A DNA stretch of 64,000 nt from Orbicella franksi (lineage: Eukaryota), in assembly GCA_964199315.1 (NCBI GenBank), contig OZ116703.1, positions 26,908,001 through 26,972,000 of the forward strand. Reading direction: 5' to 3'. The notes under the pieces are model-generated. The model saw nothing but the letters and a program-made list of their open reading frames with translations, searched no databases and was not told the DNA's origin. Shown in pieces: positions 6,501 to 21,200 of this stretch (the stretch's first letter is position 1; the number at the start of each line of letters is the position of its first letter). Position numbers and translations under genes: made by a program.

Positions 6501-9500
6501 CAAAGAAATGTGTTAAACTACACAATCAGTTATAAAATTTACATGCAAAAAAAAAAAGGTTTAAAAACTAAGTACATTTAAAAAATATTCACGATGCCTA
6601 CAAACACAGTGAGTAGCTGTCCACAAATAGTTCAAAGAGGTATGTTTTAAGTCCTTTTTTGAAGCTCTCATAAAGTTTGACTTGCGTATGGCAAGTGGCA
6701 GTTTGTTCCTAATCTTGGGGCACATATACTAAATGCCCTATCATCATAGGTCTTTGTGAAAGACTTCGGCTGATCTATCTAACCGTGTTGTTAGCGTCGT
6801 CGTTCTACAAAATTGTGGCCATCCAGTTAATGATGTACGTATATGCACATGTCTCATACACAAACATTTTAACGAATATCTTTTACAGGGGTAATTTCTT
6901 CTTAGCGCGAACGGCCTCTGGTTTATCATCGGCATTCTTCGTTTCAAAGCAAATGAAAATACCTTCCTTCACTTTGGCATCGAACTTTTGATAGCTCAAA
7001 CCTTGTCGCTGCTCATTCTGCATTTTTCCGCATATAACAACGGTTTTGATTCCTTGCATCTGGAGGAGTGGAGTACATTCATCGCACGGTGTCTTTGTTA
7101 CAAACAACGTTCCGTCCGCAAAGTCCTTGGTGTTGCGCAACAGCAAGGCGTTTTGTTCAGCGTGGATCGAATACGGATACTTCTTATCTTTAACACTTGC
7201 ATCGTGACGAGAAGCCCTTGCAAACTCACCGTACAGCGCCTTCGTCGGGAATCCATTCCAACCGATAGCTACGATTTCATGGTCTTTGTTAATGACCACC
7301 GCACCCACTCCTGCAGTAGGCTCGTCTGTCCGCTCGGCTAAGAATTTTGCAAAGGTTATGAAGAAAGAGGCCTGTGAATGATCAAGCTCGTTTTTCGCTG
7401 GGTCGAACGAGGTCGTTCCATTCTGGTTTAGGGCCTCAAATTTGTATCCTTTTTCTGAGCCTACAAAAACGTGAGCCATCCATTTAAAGAGGCCGTTAAA
7501 ATCACTCTCGACCTGCTTTTTCATAATTTCGTCGAAAGCTAGCCATGGAAGGTCGTCTTTGGCGCGTGCCATCCAGTTTTCCTCCCAGTAGGTTTTAAAT
7601 AGCTCTCTCTGTAGCTCCTCTAAAGCCGCTATGGGTGTCTTGGTTTTCTTCTTTTTCTCGCTAGCTTCCACGACTTCCTCTTCCACTCTGGGAACAAACG
7701 TGGTTTCACCGATTGCGCTAACTTTAAAAAGATTATCGACACACGACTTTTCGGCTTCAAATTTCTCTTTATCTAGACCTATGTATCCAGGTTCAATTGG
7801 CAGGTAGAAGACTCTCTTGACTTTAGATTGCACCAGAAGCTTTGTGCAGAAAGAACACGGCTTTCGTGAGACGAACACTTTACAACCTTGAGCCATATTG
7901 TGGTGCTTCATCAACAGACGGGTTACACCATGGACGTCGTCGCGTGAACATTCTGCAGCATAAAGGATATCATCAGGTAATACAAGCAAGGCTCCAACTT
8001 TCTTGAAAGGATCAGACTGCGGATCTGGGGTTGCTGTAATCTTGGAAGGATCAGGCTGCGCATCTGATGTCGCTGCAACCTTGGAAGGATCAGGCTGGGC
8101 ATCTGATGTCGCTTCAACCTTGGAAGGATCAGGTTTCGCATCTGATGTCGCTGCAATCTTGGAAGGATCGGGCCGCGCAACTTGGGTTGCTGGAAACCGT
8201 TCCATCCAGAGAGCTAAAGCCATAAACAGGTTCTCTTTAGATATTCTGGATTCCCGATCTGCATACGAAGGAGACTCTTTGGGAGTGGAAGCGTGTGCGC
8301 GCTTCCGTCCTCCTCGCGTCCCCATTGTGGCTGAAGCATCTGAAGGATCTGAAGAGTTCGTGGAGCTATTGTGAATGTTAGAAATGCCTTTATTCGGAGC
8401 TTCTGGCGTTTGATTCATTCTCGAGTTGTCAAAAACTCCGCTACTCGTAAAAACGCGTCCAAAGTGGCTGGGATTCTAGAGTTCTGAGAAACGTTTTTCA
8501 CGTGATTTATTGTTCTCGATGTGCCAATCAGAGACGTCGACGTGGACAAATTAGACAAAGGGACGCAGCACAGACTCTTCAACAGAGAGCTTTTTGTCTC
8601 CGTTCGAAAGACAAAAGAACTGAGATGTCAATGATTGTAGCCAGATATATACGGTATCATGGCTGAAAATTTGATCTCAGAAAAACTTCAGCGACAGCCA
8701 ACAGTAACTGCCGACAACGTCATATTTAATCGTCCCCCCTCACCTGCTCCATCCGAATACAAGTGCAGTAAATCTCAAACATAAAAATTTTAAGTCCATG
8801 GGCAACATTATGAAGCGGAGAAAGTTAAATGAACCTCAATCTTTCATATACCGTCATTTGGGTCGTCACGCAACACTTCTCACCAATAGCACGGGGGGTG
8901 GGGCAACGATGCGTGGTGATCCAACAAACAGCTGCGAGGGAGACCACCTAGAGCTTATTCTGTTTTTTTTTTTTTTTGTTTTTTTTTTACCGCACAGAGA
9001 TTTGGGATGTCCATTGGACGACTATATATTGGATAATTTGTGTTTGATATCCTGTTCTGAGAGACCGAGACTCTTACTCCGCGGTTCCCTTGTACGCACC
9101 TTGGGCAATTTTCAGACGCGACATCCTGTCCAAAAGCAGCTAAAAGTAAACTTGAACATTTTTGAAATGCAAAATACCTTCCAGTAGTAAGCCCTACTCG
9201 CGACAATACGCCCCCCCCCCCGGGAATTTTCAACCCCCCAACGAAGGTTCAAAGCACATACTTAACACAGTTACGAATATATTATTTTTTCTACAAGGCC
9301 AAATAAATACTGTATATACCAATTCCATTTTCCGATCGACGTTTGAACGATCGTTAATAAATTCATATTCCTTTTGTTTTATCCTTAAACCTGCTTACGA
9401 CGTGTCGTCTTGCTAAAATCACTGACAACAGATTTTAACATTTTCTGTCCTGTTTTACAGGAAACGCCTTATCCTAACGACGAGTCACTGCAGAAAAGCC

Positions 9501-9831: not shown

Positions 9832-9961
9832 TTAATTGAACACTCCCCCAATGGGGCTTTTCACCTAGGCTAATGAAACCAAATGATGAAACAAATAATG
9901 CAAATTAACATAAGAGGGTTAAAAATCCCAACCGGCAGGAGGCAGACCAGTTGGCTATTTA
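9832..9961 (-). mobile_element. 3' fragment of a tRNA-derived SINE
   Basis: Reverse complement GTAAATAGCCAACTGGTCTGCCTCCTGCCGGTTGGGATTTTTAAC resembles the 3' part of the SINE at 35068-35240. Confidence 0.55.
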
Positions 9962-12559
9962 CTATTTACAATTTTTTATTTTCAAATTGTATCAAAATTT
10001 GTGGTGCATGATTTTGAAAATATTTTATTTGTAAACATATTTATAAATAAAATTGTACCTTTTGACCATGTGTGTGACTATTAATAGAACAAATCTTTTC
10101 AGTCTTGTGTTATGACTCGTTACGATGTGAAGATAACCACATATATTTTTGGCATTTTGGACACAGCATGTGCTCGCAGCTTCAAAGCCTTGCCAAAACC
10201 CCTGAGCCAATTTTCCAATGAAGGCTAACCACTAACTTAGAACAGTTGTTTTGCTTGGCTGTGATAGCCTAAGAGACACTTGGTACTCTTTAGCGGCATG
10301 TCAGACTAGTTGCCGAACCATGGTATGTATTTTGGTGAGGCTAATCATGCCTGATTTGTCGCCGTATTGGCTAATTAAGAATTTTGATAGGATGAAATGT
10401 AAAATCGGCACCGACACCGGCACAAACCTGTTTACAGGCGTTTCATACTACTCTGCCTTGCCTGCCCTGAGGCACTGTAAAGAAAAGGAGCGAATGGTGG
10501 CGAACGAACTAAAATGGAGAAATGAAAAGTAAATTAAACTGATCCTGTCTTATTTTTTTGTCGCTTACACTTCACTCCGTGTTAGGCCGGCTTGTGAACT
10601 TGCCACGGGGAAAGCATCTAGTATGGCGCTCCATATTAGCTTCGCTCTACGAACGGTTTTAAATGTGTAATCGCCTCTCTGAAGCACTGAAATCACCGTT
10701 GATTTCCACGCGCAACCCCAGCGCGAGAAAAGCTGTGGCAAAAATTGCACCAAAACTCGTCTGTGTAAATGAGCCTTAAACAACTGAATTCTGTCTATTT
10801 TCAGTTCAGTTGCTTCAATGCACGAATCCATTTGTAGCTTCGTAAAGCTTTTTCTTTTGTACTTTGCTTAAAAGAGTTTTTTCTTATAATACTAACCAAC
10901 GGTGTTTAGCAATACTCCAGTGAACAATTCGTAGAAAACATTTGGAGATGGAACCGAGACAAAACGTACTAGTTACTTCCTCTTAGCTATGATTTCTGTC
11001 GAGAGAGTTGCTGTAGTAACTAATTTTGAATTGTTTAAAAAATTATTTATTTCTTCAGCGATTAGACTGAATCCTGCTAAACGTTTGGTACGTGATGTAA
11101 GCCGTATCTTGCGCTCGCGCGCGGACGTCACCCAGTACTTCGAGTATTCCACGCTGATGGACAGCGAAATGCAAAAGACCAAATCTTACACTTTGACTGT
11201 TAAATCGGTCTTCCACCTCGAGCGTGCAGTTAATTAACAGATGATTTCCTGAATCGGAGTGTGATCTCATGCAAACTATAAATAAATTTTGGAATGTTTA
11301 GCTGAGAAATTTTAATAATTTATCCTTCTAAGAGACAATCGGAGCCAGTTTTCCTGCGAAAGAAAAGCTGTATTGACGCTTTTTGCAGTTTATTTTTTCG
11401 GGCGCTGTGAGTTAAAACCAACATTGATTTAGTCTCAATTTAACAAATAGACTGGGTAAATAATAGCGAACTTGGCCGCGTTGAACTTGATTATTTAATG
11501 AAAACCTACAAGCCTGAAACACGACAAACGAAAATATTGCTTTGACAGAATATCAAGTTTTCATTCGTCAAGAAAAATAGATGCCCTTCCCCTGGGTAAA
11601 CGAGGAGGAATTTGAAAGCATTTTATCTGCCTCCTTCTTCAGAAACGCGCCACCGGACTAGCGCACATCTTGGATTTAAAAATATTGTAATGCTGGGTCA
11701 GATTAATGCGGATTAAAAATATGGAGCGGCAACGTTTTGCGCGGGAAATGTACGTCAGCGTGAAAAATGCACAATATAAACTTCTACAAATTTTATTTTG
11801 ATATTAACTTCAAGGCTAAATTTAGCTATTTTTCATTTTTTACAATATATACATTTTACAAACCGAGGACGCAGCTTTCATTCGAAACGTCATTTATATA
11901 AAGCTTTGCTCCTCGTAAATAGCTAAAATGATTTAATAAGGAAAAAGCGAAAACGTGATTTACAGGCTGTAATTATCTCTGATTGCTTTCTGGAAAATTC
12001 ATGAAGGTTACGTAATATAGATGTGTGTTCTTTTCAGTTTTCTCTCTTAGTAGTAACTTGAGAGTAAGTAAACTTGACTTTCAGTCAGAAGTCTTCTTTA
12101 TATCTTCTGCAAGGTCAAGGCAAAATTACTAACAGGCTTCAAGGAAACCACGCTCGGCCAAAATTCTTGAAATGTTCGCTGTGTAAGCGAATTATAGAGT
12201 TCCTTTCACGGCGTTTTGTAATTGCCTGTCCGTATTGCACTTTTCCAACCACAGCAGTCAGCTGACGGAATGGCGACGAATCAAGGCATGTCATTGAAAC
12301 TGAGATGAATACATCATCGTGACTGCCAACGGGGATTCTATCTTCTGTCTCTTGCGGTATTTATTTACAAGATACCCTACAATATTTCACACCATAAGAA
12401 AATATCTTTCTCCAGCGGGAAAAGCCATAAAGTTACAGCGGGCACGAAGAAAATATTACCAACTTGTTTGTACACTATCCACAGGAGTTCGCTTCCTGCG
12501 CAACTCAAAGAACAGTTATGTAAAAAAGCTATGAAAGTCCTCTCTTTCTACGTTGGTAT

Positions 12560-13226
12560 TTAACTATCTGGTACCGAAATAAAAGTAGCACCACTGAAAA
12601 AGCTGATGATATAGACGAGGATTGAAACGCCTGCTTGGTACGGTAAAGAGATGCGTACAGGTATCAAAAAAGACATAGAAACGCCCTCTAAATTGGCCAA
12701 CTGAAAAACAAACACAGCTGTCGAGCTTCGCACAGTTCGATGGGCTCGTATTTCTTGATTCAAACCGTCTCCAATGCGGGCCAATGTCCTTCCAATTTCT
12801 CTCACTCTCATTCTTCTAACACGGGCCACATCATATTGGGAATGTTCCGTGGAATCGCTTGAATGTTCCCCCATGAGTGAACTGCAGAAGAGAACCATCC
12901 GTTTGTACCAGGGTATAAGTTTTCTGCTGTCGACAAATAAGAAGGAATCGTATAAGCGGCACGAAGAAGTTTTTATCGCGTTTGTGAAACGAATTCGAGA
13001 CTGAACCAGGCGCTGTTGTGATATAATATTCACCCCTGTGTATTTACATTACTGCTCGCACGTATTTGATAAAAACCTATGAAATTTTTATTGCCCTGTT
13101 ATAGCAAAAACAGATTAAAATGATACAACTCTCGGAAAATCAGGAAAAAACACACTTACGATTTAGTTCGTCACTACTTAAAAATATTGTCAAAGGCAAC
13201 TGTAGATATCGTAATTTCCGTCCCAT
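12560..13226 (-). CDS. Candidate BH3-only protein, 2 exons, 180 aa, with C-terminal hydrophobic tail
   Basis: Exon 1 13226-13160 (MGRKLRYLQLPLTIFLSSDELN; donor GTAAGT) joins in phase to exon 2 13035-12560. IGRTLARIGDGLN at 12758-12796 fits the BH3 consensus. Hydrophobic C-terminus; minus-strand AATAAA near 12360. Confidence 0.65.
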
Positions 13227-16200
13227 GAACAAATTTGGTTTATTTGTATATTCGCACTACATTAGTGAGACGTAATTCTCCTTACAAGGTCATTCGAACC
13301 ATCGCGTGAAGACTGCATGGTTGTGCGTGGAATAATTTGATTATCAGTTTGCTGTGTCGTGGAGCAGGTTATTAGGGAATCATAAACAAAATAAATGAGC
13401 ACGCCTTTCCGAATACGAAGGTCACGTTATCTAAAAATGAACTTAAGTGCGTAGTTCTATTTTTTATTTTAGTTTTTATTGTTACGATTTCAGTTGTGAG
13501 TCATAAAACACTGCGGAAACTCGACTAAGTCCTTTTTACATATAGATTTCTCTTAACATAAACAGGATATCTTTTTTGAATAGCCTTAATCGTCTTGGTT
13601 CAAGATAACGTGTTAATTTCAGTTTTGTCATACTATACTAACGTGGCGATTTGAAAAGCCAGTCAAATTTGAAAAGCAAAACTTTACAAGCGTATGTTCG
13701 CAGTTGTGATGTCCCCGAGGCAATCCAAAAGGAACAAATTAGATTAGAATTTGGGGTGGTAACATTTCAAAAGCATTGTGTCTATAAGTATTAAGGAAGC
13801 GTATGAGTTCAGCCTTCTCGTCCTTGGGGAACAAAAAATAGAAATAAAAAAAATACACTTCGACACACCTGTTGGCGATGATTCAGAGCTCTTGATGTCA
13901 AACGGACAAACGGGCTTCACTGGGTGTATACTGCCTGGCAAGTTCAAATTGTTTTCCACAGCTAAGAAGTGATACTTCTTCCAATATCAGTGACCTTCAC
14001 GCGAGTTCTAACGTTTGTCAACTTTTATTGACGGCCAGTGCTAATAAGCTATTGTTTCTTAACGAACGTTTGGCGCCTAACGTGTTGCGAATAAAACAAA
14101 AATTTGAAGCTTTGCATCCAATTTATAGCAGAACATACATGCCAAGCGCCACAGAGTCGCCTGCACTTTGTAAACACTCCATGTAACCCTCTTGTGAAAC
14201 AAAAACACGCGCACGAAACAATTGAACGCACTAATCCCTAAACATTGCCAATGCCCGTCTACGAAGCTTATTTGCATGATGTTTGTCACGCTTCCCGACT
14301 AGAGCTCTCTAATCATGTTAAGGAAGCGACTAATAACAAACATTTTCGTACTTTTCCTGTCTAAACTCTTTGAAAATTGTCTCACATCAGTGTATATTAG
14401 ATTTATAACCAGACTAATTTGATTCGGAACTCCCTTTTGTAGTTTTTGTTGGAAATTTAGTCAGTCATGTGGTTTCCTGGCGCCATTTTGACTATTCTCG
14501 CGTGCTGTGCAACGTTTCCGCGATGTGTCGCAGCAGCTTTGCGATGTAACTCTCAAGTATTTACATCCTGTAAAGGTTGCACGTCTTTTTGAATGTTACA
14601 AACGGTGTTCGTAAAGCAGTGTTCGTAAACATAAGCATAGATTAGTTTTTCACCTTTTTTATGCCGCACGATGATACTAATTAATGGCTGATAAAATCGA
14701 TTGACATTGTTTACAAAATTTTGATGACGAAGCAAAAGCATTGCTATAATTGAATTTGTTTTCCTTAACAAGAAGAATCGTTCAACTCGTTTCCGTTGAA
14801 AACGAAAAAAAGAGAGCTAACCAAAAAATTGAACTTTGATTCCAACATTTCTCACGTCGTAAGGTGTAAAGCTTTTTCAGTGCTGCATGAATGAATACAC
14901 GAAGTTTATTCACTATGTGTTTGCTATTTGAAAAATAATTAGGGAAAAAATACAACAGGTGACCTGAGGATTTTTCGAATGTCATTGGATATTTGTGAAA
15001 CTCTCCGACGGCTTGTAAGTTTTGGAACGGGCCTGTAATCCGTGTCAAATCCGATTTCTTTTCCTCACGTACTGGGCTGGTCCACCAAAAAAATGCAGTT
15101 TTATTTAAAGCAGCAATTGATCTTCAAGCAATAAATTATTCATTGAAAACTTGGTGAGTCATCGCAAGGGGTTTTTCCCTTGATGTCGCTGGAATAAAAA
15201 TGTGCATGAATCAATTGTTTATCAATCGTGTTCCTCTCGTTTTGAGTCGTTCCATAAAACCACTTGACTAGTAAGGAACAGACCCCACAAACTGCACCAA
15301 AAATAAATACCTTAACAACGTAAAAACACCAGCTGTCATAGTCAAAAATTATACCTTGTGCAGCTTTTCTCAGAAAGCTCAGATTAACAATCATTCATGT
15401 CTCATGGCATGGGCAATGGCTACCTTAAAACGTGATGGCTACGGTTTGTTAAATGAATACTGAAAAATCAAGCATTTTCTTTCGACATTTGTCCCCATGC
15501 ACGACGAGACTATTTGCCTTCTCAACATAATAATTTAGTTTCCCTGCCTGATTGAGCTTGGAATCGTTTTAACAAGAACATATAATTAAAAATTTTCATG
15601 TCATCCCATGGTGGATATAAATTGAAAAAGTCTAATATTAAACGGCAGCTTGTTTGATTTAGTTATAAAAGGGAGTCATTGCTTAACCTTTCGTAAAACA
15701 TCTGCGTTAAATTGAAGCACGAAACACTACGAGAGATCTCTAGTGCGTTGAACTTCTAGGAACGTAGGCAAATAAATTTTTACTTTGAAAGAATAAAAAG
15801 TAAATCACATCATTCCCTGATAACTTTGCAATGAGAAGGAATTTATACTTGCAGCGCCAGCCGCCTTGAAAACACACTGAGTTAAACAAACTGATGACGT
15901 CTTAGGTCAGCCGCAGCCTTCTGCAGCTCAGTGGACATATTATCTTCCTACAAATAAGGAAAAGTTAATTGCATATTTTGTTGCGAATTCCGTCATGTTG
16001 TTGTATTGTTACCCGATGTAATGCTCCATAACGATAAGCAATTAACAGTAAGTCTTAGTGAATCTATTTGAAGATCAACTGAAGCAACCTTAACTGGTAA
16101 TTCTGACGATTTTGTTATCATTGCGCAAGGCAAAACAGAACAATATTTCTGCTATTTTTCAAACTTCTCTTGCTTGTTTTGGCGACATTTAATTATTGTT

Positions 16201-18231
16201 TCTTAACGTGACATATATTTTAATTTCAATAGTACCTGATAGTACTACTTTACTTTTCACCTAAAATTGGCACAAAACAAAACAAAACAAAACTGACTGC
16301 ATGAAGGAGAAATTGCAAGTGGGCACGTCGGCTGAGGAATGATCTCAAAGAACAAGGATGTTGTCAAACAACAAGGATGTTGTATTTGTTGTCGGCTTGA
16401 GCACACTGCAAAACTTTCATCGTTGGGTGGTCGGATTAATAATCATATCAAAAAGGTTAACAGAAAAGGCTATGGCAAATTTAGGTTTCACTTGCTTCGT
16501 CATTGCACAAAAGTATCAACGACTTCTGAACCATGTGATTTTCTCGGTTTTTCTTCAGTCCCTCAGTTCTTTTTTCCTCTAGCTAGGCTGTAAAACCAAT
16601 CCTTAGGCTTCAAAAGTTTTACATGGATCCTCTTTTTTCAGGTTCTTCGACTTATTTACCGCCAGGGTTTAAAAGAAATTTACTTCGTATTTCTCGTTCG
16701 TGCATGAGGAAAACATTTCAATTCCGGTAAGAGTCGCGAGAAGTGGGTTGTAGCACATCAAAAATGCAGCCCACAGCTCCGCCCACGAGATTGGCCAGTC
16801 ACGGCGAGCTTACTGTGAATAACGATAAATGCGCATGCGTAACATCCTGTCAATGAACATGATGGACAGTTGTCCATGTTGGCCATCGTTGCCAAATTAC
16901 TATTTGGCTTTCTGTCAAATTAACGTCCTTAACTTAGTTCGAAGCCGACAGCACTGATCACGCACCATTGAGCTTCTAGTCAGTTGCAGTCGTTCAGTCA
17001 CTCAGTGAAGCCTGAGTGGGAAAAACAGCGATTTTAAGGGAACACCAGCCCTTAATTTCCTGCTATGGCAAAAATTATAAAGGATTGCGACTTACCTCAT
17101 TTCCTAATATCAGCATCCGGCAGCAAATCGCTTGGACCATCTTGCTAGTCTCGTCCTGCTATCGAGTGTGAAAGAAGTGCGAGGCTGATCGAACAACAGC
17201 TACATAAATCAAGGCACTGACTGGCAGAATGCCCGCATGTCCATTTTGTTGTCCCACCTAGCGATTCTTCACATCTATTAGACTGTTATTATCTCCCATT
17301 AAATACTTTGCATGCTTGATATCAAGAACTTGAACCTTTTTCAGCTATTTCAACTGCCTGATCGCTAGTTTTCTGGTGATAGCTCTTCAGTGGAACGGAC
17401 CCTCTCTCGGTTGACTTGATCGGTCAGTCGAATGAATGATCAAACTCCGGAGTACTTATTAAAAGACCTATTTAAACTGACCCTTCAGCACGGACTATGG
17501 ACTTCGAAATATAGCAAACAAATGAGCTTTGCCCGAGAGCCCTGCAACAATTCTTTTTAAGGCAGTTTTTGCTATAGTGGGGTACATTTTTTGGGGGAGT
17601 AGCCTTCCAGTAGATCTTGCCGACATCAATCCCTTAATGTCCTCCTCGTAATGCTCAGACTGTTTTGTCCTGTGTTTCACTAGGATACCAAGTCCCGTTA
17701 TCCAGTTCTCCAAAGCCTCGACCTTATGGGACCCTATGAGGTTATGCTTCTGTCCGACCAACACATTTTATTTTCCATACTTGTTTTTTAGAGGTGGCCC
17801 CTAAAATTTAAACCAGTTGTCAGACCTGCCCGCCTGCATGCTAATATATTATAATTATAAATGGCTTCTGGTGATGGTGATTCGTGTTTTATCGTTTAAA
17901 TCATGATACTTGTTCTCTCCTGCTTTTCACCATTTGAAAATTTCGGCTTGAAGATTTAACGGCCATGTGGGGAAAAGAATGTATGTATAAATACGCCCAG
18001 TCGTAGTGTCCAGACCAAAGATTCTAGTTTAAAGACTAAAATTTGTGACTCATTTTGCGAACAGACAACTCAGACCTACCGGTCTTTCTCATGGGTGGAC
18101 TGGAAACCAATCAGAACATGAGTTAGTCACATGGACTATCACGTGATCCTGCGTGCAAGGAAGGACGCCATTGCACGAGTTCCCTGAGATTTTTGTCGTG
18201 CGCTTGTTAGCTCTTACTTGAACTGGGCAAA

Positions 18232-21200
18232 ATGACTCGTGTTTTCATTGGAAGACTATCGATGAGTGCAAGAGAAAGTGATGTGGAGAGATTCCTTCGA
18301 GGTTATGGTAAAGTAAGGGATATAAGCTTGAAGAGAGGCTACGGATTCGTGGTAAGAGGAATACGGATATTGTTGCGTGCTTTCGCTATGGAGTCTTTCT
18401 TTTGTGGCCTTCTGTCTTTAACAAGAAAGCTTACATTTTACCTGTAGGAGTTTGACGATTACCGAGATGCTGACGACGCTATTGCAGATTTGAATGGCAA
18501 GGAACTGATGGGAGAAAGGTGAGTGAAACTAGTTAACCTGGATATGTAAAATATCAGTTGTAAATGATAATAAATTATTGATCACGAGCCGAGTCCAAGT
18601 CCATACAATGCTTACCACAAGCTTATACAGAGATGTATCATGTACGAGTACACATCAACTGTAGCTTCTTATAGTTGACTTCGTTTTCATTAGATTCGAC
18701 TGCCTTCACAGTGAGGGATACATTATTTCAAAATGTCAATATTCCATGCGTTTCATATTTTCAAGTCTTTGATTCGGGACCGCGCCACAAGCACCCAATT
18801 GAGCATTCATGAATCACCGATTTTAATTATTTTGTCTTGAAATTTGCAATGAAAATTGTCAAATTGCAATATGGTGTGTTTTTTTTTCCTATTATGTCAT
18901 GAACATATATTTGTAAGAAGTTAGTTTTACATCTCTTCTTGTGACTGGAGAGTGTATTTGTCTTTCTTCCAGTGTTGCATTAGAACTAGCAAGAGGCAAA
19001 AGGGTTGGAGGAGGTGGCGGTCGTGGTGGTGGAAGAGGAGGTGGTTACGGAGGGAGAAGACCAGTTTGGCTTGACAAGTATTAATATAGACATATTCTTC
19101 TCACCTTTTAATAAGGACACTGGCTCCCCTGTTTTCAACATGACTGTAAACACTGCCCCCATATTCTTCATTTTATTCAGCTAACCTATTGAATTGCAGG
19201 ATATACAGTAGATCATAACAGGAAGTTTAACAGTGCATTTGTTTGTATATCATGTAAAACAAGCATAGATGAGCTTCCCACAGAGTACAGGGAAAGCCAT
19301 GATGTGCAGAATGTGCCTGTATTTACAAGGGAGGCACTGTCCTTAACCATTGTAAATCATGAAATTTAAATTTTACCAAAACCAAAATGTATCAACAGTT
19401 ACTAGCATACTTTAATATCTTACTGTTCGAGTGTAACACAACTTGAGAAATTGTCATATTCTTAGCTAATTTTTGGTTTTGCCATTTGTACTTTTGTTTG
19501 GTACAGTGGAACCTCAATATAATGAAGGGCCAGGGAACTGGCAAAATATGTTTGCTTTAATGAGGTTTCACTGAAGAATATCATTCATTATACAGAGGGC
19601 TTCGTTATATAGAGGTTTGTTAAATTGAGGTTCCATTGTATTACTATATCCATGGAAGAGTTTGTATTTATACAATTTGTTGTGTTTGTTTTCCCCACTG
19701 GGGGTCAAGGTATGGACCTCCGGTAAGGACTCAGTACCGTGTCATCGTTGAGAACATGTCCAGTCGTACAAGTTGGCAGGTAATTACAGTATTATAGTTT
19801 ATTACTATATAATTTTATACGGTAATCTAGCATTGTAACAGGATTTTCTGGATTTTTACACTTTGTTTGTGAAGCCTTAACTACATGTACCTGTTGTATC
19901 CTTTTCCTATACTAATTTGTCAAGTAGATTACAGTACGTTTTATCCTATTAAACCTTGAAATCGAACTTATTTTAATTAATTTTATCTGAATTGTTTTAC
20001 AATGTCATTAGGGGATATACAAATATAGGAATTATGTATAGCCATTGTTATATAAAGGTACCATCTCAAAACTTGGTTTGAAAATGAGTAGCCACCAAAT
20101 TTGTCACCTTAAACCACGGCCACAGGTACTACTTTGTGTACTTGTAACTTTCCAATAATACATAACACTTTCTTTTAATGTTTTATTCTAATAGACACAA
20201 TAGCAGAAACCTGGGTAAAACTAAAACTGAAAATTCTCCATGTCAGAGTTGTGTTGTTAAAATTTCATAAGGTTTTTTTTCCAGTGATTGACTTCAGGCA
20301 AAAAAGCTCACTAAGAACAGTTTCCCATTCTTTACTTTACCTTTGTTTGTTGACAGGGCGTTAAGGAATAAGCGCTTGATATTCACTAAGCAAAGGGTAC
20401 AAATGATGTTGGATCTTTCCCTAAACTGAGAGAGGTTCCTTTTGTGTGTCACTGCCTTGCGACAGTTGTGAAAGCTTGCAAATTAACGATGTGAAGTGAC
20501 TAAATGTGAAATGGGTACAGTGATTGATGAGAAGTCTGCTTGTCAACTCTGAGGCTACTTAACTAAATCTGTGATTTGTGAGAATTTGAAGAGAGGTAAA
20601 ATATCTTCAGGTAAGAGAGAGAGGAGACAATTGCCTTCCTTTCGGGGTTTGAAATCAGGAAAAGAAAAATTTAAAAAATTATCATCTATCGAACTGCTTG
20701 ATACAGCTTATGCGTACAAATTATGCAAAATTTTCTACAAGATAGGTACTTGTACATGTACAGCTGCTTTTGTGACGCAGTTTTTACTGATTATTACTTG
20801 AGATGGTAAAATTAAAGTTTATTGTTTATGAAATCTGTCAATTTTTGATTCCTTTGCATTTTTTACGAGTAATTACTCTGGTTGTTTAAATTAAATTGAA
20901 GATAATCACTACGAACCAGCAGTGTTCAATGCATTGTTGATGTTATTAAACATTTAAAGATATATAAAATAAAATTATTGCATTTGACCACGTTTGCTAT
21001 ATAGTATGTTTCAAGTGTAGTTTTATTTGGTACCTTTCTTTTAGTTTTTAACCATCGTCTTATTTTATTATTACAGGATCTCAAAGACCACCTTCGCCAG
21101 GTCAGCAATGCCAAATTGACTTACGCTGATGCACATAAAAAGAGAGTAGGAGAAGGGTGAGATCAATTATTTTTTTTGGATTTTTTTCATTGCCTTGCAG

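Follow-up and report, generated by a model that had tools for sequence, protein, structure and literature searches.

BH3-only proteins constitute a functional class assembled from several unrelated families, and BH3-like motifs also occur in proteins with other roles. The coral complement of Bcl-2, Bax, Bak, Bok, APAF-1, and caspase genes resembles that of the vertebrates, and apoptosis of the host cell is one of the routes that have been proposed for the loss of symbionts in bleaching. The mammalian proteins Hrk/DP5 and Bik (approximately 90–160 aa) are small, possess a single BH3 helix without BH1, BH2, or BH4 regions, have a hydrophobic C-terminus near the stop codon, and act by inserting the BH3 into the groove of the pro-survival Bcl-2 proteins.

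Within the cnidarians, BH3-only proteins have been demonstrated experimentally only in Hydra (PMC7489894), where HyBH3-only-2 was found to be pro-apoptotic (Lasi et al., 2010; Banjara et al., 2020, PMC7489894) and where the peptide of that protein bound HyBcl-2-4 at 149 nM, with the corresponding value for the BH3 peptide of HyBak1 being 310 nM (PMC7489894). For Acropora, no BH3-only proteins were identifiable (PMC4083563), and the BH3-only repertoire has been called an open problem (PMC4715348). BH3-only proteins have also been hypothesized for Acropora millepora, A. digitifera, and Nematostella (Suraweera et al., 2022, PMC8998228, Figure 5), from sequence alone, which candidates that article describes as intronless genes encoding substantially disordered proteins.

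The locus described here lies in a window of 64,000 nucleotides—the whole stretch of Orbicella franksi DNA that was analyzed—and holds, on the minus strand, a coral gene that is expressed, occurs as a single copy, and has one or two alternative non-coding 5' exons and one coding exon (Table 1). As the best explanation of the whole, to which we assign a probability of roughly 0.6, the product of approximately 104 aa would be a BH3-only protein of the Hrk/Bik layout: a variable N-terminus (residues 1–23), probably disordered, would give way to an amphipathic helix bearing a canonical BH3 of the Bak type (the motif being carried by residues 24–41), after which two conserved segments of moderate hydrophobicity would extend nearly to the C-terminus. 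With Hrk and Bik the candidate would share the small size, the single BH3 helix, the hydrophobic end, and, as predicted from a modelled complex, the mode of action. Outside the motif, in contrast, there is no sequence similarity to either protein, and whereas Hrk and Bik have one transmembrane helix, the candidate has two conserved hydrophobic segments (some 50 aa in all), the last being weak or charged in some members of the family. Since Hrk and Bik are vertebrate families, a shared ancestry with the coral gene is unlikely.

With respect to the motif itself, the closest match is the BH3 of Bak: human BAK1 (residues ~72–87), VGRQLAIIGDDIN, and the Bak-like protein encoded in this genome (L017), IGRRLGEIGDEID, share G-R-x-L ... 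I-G-D with the candidate motif, IGRTLARIGDGLN, which the HyBak1 peptide, LGRVLASFGDEIN, likewise resembles. Bak, however, is a multi-domain pore former of the Bcl-2 fold with BH1, BH2, and a transmembrane helix, whereas in the candidate nothing past the BH3 aligns with that fold; a derivation of the candidate from a Bak-like gene is possible. The HyBH3-only-2 motif, AIGACLRAIGDDIQ, displays the same I-G ... L-x-x-I-G-D frame, but that protein belongs to a different family—the sequence searches gave no match between HyBH3-only-2 and the candidate family in either direction—and its binding and killing were demonstrated by experiment, whereas those of the candidate are predicted. As to the Suraweera et al. 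set, the comparison could be made by description: the candidate has a 5' intron and a half-hydrophobic protein, to which features the intronless and disordered character described there is poorly suited, so that the candidate is probably a different gene. The motif IGRTLARIGDGLN was printed in no paper of the literature collection searched.

Table 1. Positions of the features of the locus within the window, with the basis for each.
Feature	Position	Strand	Basis and remarks
Conserved CDS, 104 aa	12563..12874	-	Alignments, dN/dS, codon-position pattern; stop codon at 12560-12562
Possible 8-residue N-terminal extension MVLFCSSL, giving 112 aa	12875..12898	-	First ATG of the coding exon (12898-12896)
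BH3 motif core, I27-N39 (IGRTLARIGDGLN)	12758..12796	-	Entropy, PDB profile, modelled contacts
Hydrophobic segment 1, residues 52-73	12656..12721	-	Invariant Q58, G64, P72; Kyte-Doolittle mean
Hydrophobic segment 2, residues 83-101, candidate tail anchor	12572..12628	-	Three residues from the C-terminus
Terminal and sole coding exon	11905..12926	-	RNA contig pieces 11901/11908-12926 and joints
Poly(A) signal variant ATTAAA	11932..11937	-	About 25-30 nt ahead of the RNA contig ends
Distal non-coding 5' exon	17096..17433	-	Joint 12926->17096; 5' end approximate
Proximal alternative 5' exon, minor form	13869..14272 (end approximate)	-	Joint 12926->13869
'Exon 1' of the earlier two-exon model	13160..13226	-	Inside the real intron; low depth, unspliced; outside the protein

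The initial annotation, made from the letters of the window, had recognized in this frame the BH3-like motif I-G-R-T-L-A-R-I-G-D-G-L-N, which is indeed present there in a stretch predicted to be helical, with I27, L31, I34, G35, D36, and L38 at the BH3 positions. A loose BH3 pattern (h-x3-L-x2-h-[GAS]-D-x-h) finds approximately one chance match per 60 kb of six-frame translation, and both one other match in the window and chance-looking matches in 60 kb of another contig were encountered, so that a match to the motif constitutes weak evidence by itself; what counts is its conservation, which lies far beyond chance. Throughout 28 family sequences, 12 columns were invariant (S8, G28, R29, L31, A32, G35, D36, L38, N39, Q58, G64, and P72), and eight of these fall within the 13-residue motif (hypergeometric p = 2e-6), where the mean column entropy was also the lowest at 0.63 bits versus 0.92–2.06 bits elsewhere, the hydrophobic segments being at 0.92–1.20 bits. 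Conservation thus peaks on the motif, which check the initial annotation had itself proposed.

A comparison of the family profile with 177,635 distinct PDB sequences returned 43 matches at E <= 10, all except one of which were BH3 regions, aligned in register—those of Bak, Bid, Puma, Bik, and a sponge Bak, the best being the Bak BH3 at E 0.069—which 42 matches go back to only some five different proteins and are each marginal when taken singly, as are all the sequence matches of the family to known BH3s (E 0.01–1). In Pfam, the BID entry matched over its BH3 in 10 of the 28 members, with a best E of 0.013 that lay below the cut-off. Alignment by hhalign with 11 Bcl-2-fold genes of this genome joined 21 columns, BH3 on BH3, and nothing else. 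The lack of BH1 and BH2, as first reported, also held: neither NWGR nor GGW occurs in the sequence, PF00452 matched 0 of the 28 members at E <= 10, and 104 aa are too few for a Bcl-2 fold. We considered and rejected a multi-domain Bcl-2 member, a truncated Bak, and a Bcl-2 pseudogene, since hhalign found no likeness beyond the BH3 and since the dN/dS values place the ORF under constraint.

As a possible partner, we took the protein P0087, the spliced product of an L014-type gene from a close relative, which is 95% identical to the L014 exon of this genome; L014 itself is Bcl-xL-like and strongly conserved, with 66% identity to the Nematostella 'bcl-2-like protein 1'. Residues 10–49 of the candidate were co-folded with residues 1–158 of P0087, and the model reached an ipSAE of 0.79 (0.79–0.81 in three runs) versus 0.03 for the best control, which score expresses likeness and not binding, since many BH3:Bcl-2 complexes have been solved and the value may reflect the memory of the model; of 78 solved complexes, 51 attained the ipSAE mark, as did 2 of 108 mismatched pairs. 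At least 84% of the contacts were common to the three runs, the partner pLDDT was at least 69, and the confident contacts joined candidate residues 20–39 with partner residues 48–101. Among the modelled contacts, R94 of the partner NWGR meets D36 and G93 meets G35, with L31 packing against partner residues 81, 84, 85, 94, 97, 98, 100, and 101, so that the predicted pose would be that of a canonical BH3 in the groove.

According to the mechanism that we propose, the hydrophobic end would anchor the protein on an intracellular membrane, either the mitochondrial outer membrane or the ER; the BH3 helix would enter the alpha2-alpha5 groove of pro-survival coral proteins of the Bcl-2/Bcl-xL type, possibly also that of Bak or Bax, with L31, I34, and L38 occupying the hydrophobic pockets and D36 pairing with the Arg of NWGR; the pore-formers would thereby be released or activated, and mitochondrial apoptosis would begin. 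In this scheme we infer the binding, as predicted by the modelled complex, as well as the membrane location and the killing, whereas the transcript with its splice, the constraint on the coding sequence, the conservation together with the synteny, and the specificity of the motif are demonstrated by the present results. That the protein is a functional BH3-only-type ligand of the coral Bcl-2 proteins is a reading that we favor to a moderate degree, and a new BH3-only family in stony corals appears probable.

The C-terminal half requires separate consideration. A hydrophobic, tail-anchor-like C-terminus had been noted initially, and a hydrophobic stretch is indeed present as segment 2, with a Kyte–Doolittle 19-residue mean of 2.05 here and of 1.1–1.9 in the other members, the corresponding values for segment 1 being 1.57 here and 1.3–2.0 across the family. 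In several members, segment 2 either contains an internal Arg or comprises only about 13 uncharged residues with a basic flank thereafter, so that a tail anchor is no more than plausible; and since another hydrophobic segment precedes the last one, a hairpin is equally possible. AF2, run on the 28-sequence alignment, gave a mean pLDDT of 53 and a pTM of 0.27, with a helix over residues 11–45 at a low overall confidence and, in the C-terminal half, a low-confidence mix of strand and helix or a hairpin, which output hints at strands and not at a clean transmembrane helix. In the ESM Atlas the only look-alike of the whole protein was an unnamed cluster, at 0.75, and none came up for the C-terminal half, while the Pfam search of all 28 members returned nothing beyond the subthreshold BID matches and scattered noise. 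The C-terminal half is nearly as conserved as the motif, with no family match or confident fold in these analyses.

From those properties stems the alternative that survives best, namely, that the gene encodes a small, conserved membrane protein that works mainly through its hydrophobic C-terminal half, the BH3-like helix being used for a different interaction or having a merely modulatory, non-lethal effect on Bcl-2 proteins; such a protein might belong to, or regulate, a complex of an organelle membrane, or it might control mitophagy or autophagy in the style of BNIP3 or Beclin. Taken jointly, we regard these possibilities as unlikely. The invariant Q58, G64, and P72 within the hydrophobic segments, whose entropy is not far above that of the motif, together with the marginal character of the matches to known BH3s, are what such a protein might be expected to show, and a high transcript word depth in ordinary RNA libraries would be unusual for a constitutively lethal protein; but the invariant residues coincide exactly with the BH3 contact set (h1–h4, G, and D), the PDB-wide search brought back essentially nothing but pro-apoptotic BH3s, and the modelled pose is canonical, at 0.76 above the controls. 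BNIP3 and NIX are likewise small proteins that pair a BH3-like helix with a membrane anchor at the C-terminus, and are situated at mitochondria or the ER with a function that extends beyond classical apoptosis. The BH3 of BNIP3, however, is atypical and dispensable, whereas the motif of the candidate is canonical and the most conserved part of the protein; moreover, none of the 28 members matched the Pfam BNIP3 entry, nor was an LIR motif seen.

Whether the ORF is translated at all can be judged from the homologs and from the pattern of substitution. In the 497-Mb assembly the locus is single-copy. A direct search with the ORF gave 12 protein clusters, and scanning the full set of 1.84 billion representatives with an HMM contributed four further distant ones, with a wider profile search arriving at about 29 matching clusters, in which the ORF and its length were kept down to 38–47% identity; the sole named member of the family is the Stylophora pistillata PFX20214.1 / A0A2B4RP57, a 'hypothetical protein'. 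The pairwise dN/dS over the 104 codons ranged from 0.19 to 0.63, and thus stayed below 1 in 21 of 21 pairs; the variable sites were distributed as 48/30/60 over the three codon positions, with position 2 strongly conserved within the hydrophobic segments; and the gaps in the CDS were exclusively in-frame, while the flanks were full of indels. Since the CDS does not exceed its flanks in similarity when close relatives are compared, the case for coding depends on how the substitutions are distributed and on the distant homologs. In the distant corals the ORF, its length, and the motif are kept amid flanking DNA most of which does not align.

Alternatively, the locus might yield a spliced non-coding RNA, or the ORF might go untranslated and have survived by chance or through constraint at the DNA level, which would accord with the equal conservation of flanks and CDS in close relatives and with the presence of at least six upstream ATGs in the distal exon. 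We nevertheless consider that explanation highly improbable in view of the retention of ORF, length, and motif at 38–47% protein identity amid flanks that mostly fail to align, of the dN/dS below 1 in every pair, and of the strong conservation of codon position 2 in the hydrophobic segments. The locus is thus, very probably, a real coding gene.

The genomic context is conserved as well. An SR splicing-factor gene, the first 40 residues of whose product are 95–100% identical, stands head-to-head upstream in three close relatives as well as in Stylophora and another coral, so that the pairing persists in distant corals. In the window this neighbor begins at 18232 on the plus strand, some 800 bp away from where the distal exon approximately starts, and a bidirectional promoter region may serve both genes. 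In Stylophora the gene model likewise includes an intron, located about 57 nt before the core ATG as against 52 nt here.

With regard to the start of the protein, a Met is found at, or adjoining, the position equivalent to 12874 in every family member, and the proteins measure 98–106 aa from that point. At the DNA level, all seven of the compared loci retain the ATG at 12898, which lies out of frame in one of them (L004), and the peptide of the extension is poorly conserved. The protein starts at either 12874 (104 aa) or 12898 (112 aa), which two ATGs the initial annotation had offered as the source of possible shorter forms; the starts of the homologs and the RNA contigs indicate that the real protein corresponds to these. 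A third ATG, at 17100–17098 in the distal exon, is in frame across the junction and would yield 123 aa here; we rejected that codon as a conserved start since it is present in only two of five related species.

The gene model was derived from the RNA contigs of two RNA-seq studies (X1 and X2) placed on 11400–17390. The main splice joint, 12926->17096, skips 4169 bases with CT..AC ends, corresponding to GT..AG on the minus strand, and was seen in the poly(A) RNA contigs of both studies, at a word depth of 312 in X1 and of 22.7 in X2; a minor joint, 12926->13869, had a word depth of 52.8, with a shorter side of 26 letters. Both joints attach non-coding 5' exons to the same coding exon, across which the word depth in X1 was 270–420. 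That terminal exon consists of the acceptor AG at 12928–12927, a 5' leader of 52 nt, the CDS, and a 3' UTR of about 655 nt, with an approximate 3' end, the contigs stopping at 11901–11908. The distal exon, whose donor is GAG|GTAAGT, is 80–88% conserved in sequence across the related species. The proximal exon, with the donor CAG|GTGTGT, has an in-frame TGA four codons ahead of its end and consequently contributes no coding sequence.

The transcript that had been anticipated from the letters thus exists as a spliced poly(A) RNA in both studies, with a splice different from the one that had been proposed. That earlier proposal was of two coding exons, 13226–13160 and 13035–12560: from an ATG at 13226 on the minus strand, 22 codons run to one base before a GTAAGT at 13159, with the donor after 13160, and an AG at 13037–13036 precedes a frame open to the stop codon (ORF 12560–13033), so that a phase-matched join would encode 180 aa. 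The RNA does not bear this model out: the contigs X1#3 (12901–13536) and X2#10 (13059–13438) cross the proposed intron 13036–13159 unspliced, the true acceptor is at 12927/12926, the stretch 13000–13536 that contains the earlier exon 1 and intron has a word depth of 18.9 versus 270–420 over the coding exon, and a 13160/13035 joint was absent among the RNA contigs of the two studies. In the orthologous loci, the donor reads CATAAGT or TTTAAG, with GT in 0 of 6, the ATG at 13226 is an ACG in one (L004), and indels upstream of 12926 break the frame. Even though the ATG, the donor, the acceptor, and the phase match all exist in this genome and the upstream part of the ORF remains open in some close relatives, those observations, along with the start of the distant homologs at the Met equivalent to 12874, leave the 180-aa protein with practically no likelihood.

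One of the at least six upstream ATGs of the distal exon opens an 11-codon uORF (MDMRAFCQSVP) at 17209–17244 on the minus strand, which is largely retained in four related species. With so many upstream ATGs in the 5' leaders, the output of protein may be low; by way of speculation, such leaders suggest that translation is held low until a signal arrives.

Two non-coding stretches of the locus are also conserved. Just upstream of the coding exon, within the intron (window 13040–13330, minus strand), the blocks GGCCAATAAAAATTTCATGG, TACGTGCGAG, and GTGACGAAC are conserved among seven related loci, and low-depth unspliced RNA contigs (12901–13536) cover this region, which may be either an enhancer or promoter located inside the gene or nothing more than retained intron. 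Farther upstream, a non-coding block of about 350 nt within window 13869–14320 (minus strand) overlaps the proximal alternative 5' exon and is conserved among this genome, Stylophora, and a third coral (L028:~9950–10330 and L029:~8470–8870), with the DNA around that block being mostly unalignable among the three. The strings contained in the block include GGCGCCAAA (reverse complement TTTGGCGCC), CACGTGAAGGTCACTGAT, and CATGGAGTGTTTACAAA; the first resembles an E2F site and is a putative binding site. The block is probably the ancestral promoter or first exon.

Extended to its full reach, the BH3-only reading would make this gene the founding member of a stony-coral-wide family, which is described in no paper of the literature collection searched, and a missing upstream trigger of mitochondrial apoptosis, in which a Bak-like BH3 is joined to a double hydrophobic module unlike that of the known BH3-only proteins, and over which the uATG-laden leaders and the promoter-proximal block kept between distant coral lineages would exert a tight control; for this larger construction we would give slightly less than even odds. 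A link to stress or bleaching is speculation. Standard annotation either misses the gene or, as in Stylophora, labels the product 'hypothetical'. With a conserved and expressed candidate, a defined peptide, point mutants, and the modelled partner P0087, the question of the BH3-only proteins in corals becomes directly testable.

Regarding the remaining Bcl-2 complement of this genome, 13 PF00452 loci (L014–L026) scored above the Pfam cut-off, all with NWGR-type and GGW motifs, and include a Bak-like (L017), a Bax-like (L020), and three Bok-like loci (L021–L023); for A. millepora, 11 multi-domain Bcl-2 members have been reported (PMC4715348). One of the 13, at L024:1369–1929 on the minus strand (G000:C11:~10.738 Mb), encodes a complete Bcl-2-like protein of 187 aa with BH1, BH2, and a transmembrane helix and is without the usual intron after GGW, which intron is present in all the other paralogs; this locus is possibly a retrocopy, with a relationship to the L016 gene.

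Further BH3-like motifs were observed in small hydrophilic ORFs elsewhere, with which, should the present reading prove true, the corals would have a multi-member BH3-only repertoire. An ORF of 84 aa, hydrophilic and with no hydrophobic tail, carries REIGKVLARIGDRIN at L031:1438–1689 (G000:C11:~4001176–4001427, plus strand), about 2.3 kb from the Bcl-2-fold gene at C11:3998701–3998997 (L015); its match to the family profile is weak (E 0.2), and its exact protein (P0110) is recorded in 15 contigs. A third BH3-like motif, VAGKLALVGDQLNQ, was found in an ORF of 73 aa at G000:C11:~3971090 on the plus strand (in L036), and shares the ending GDxLNQ with the gene of the window.
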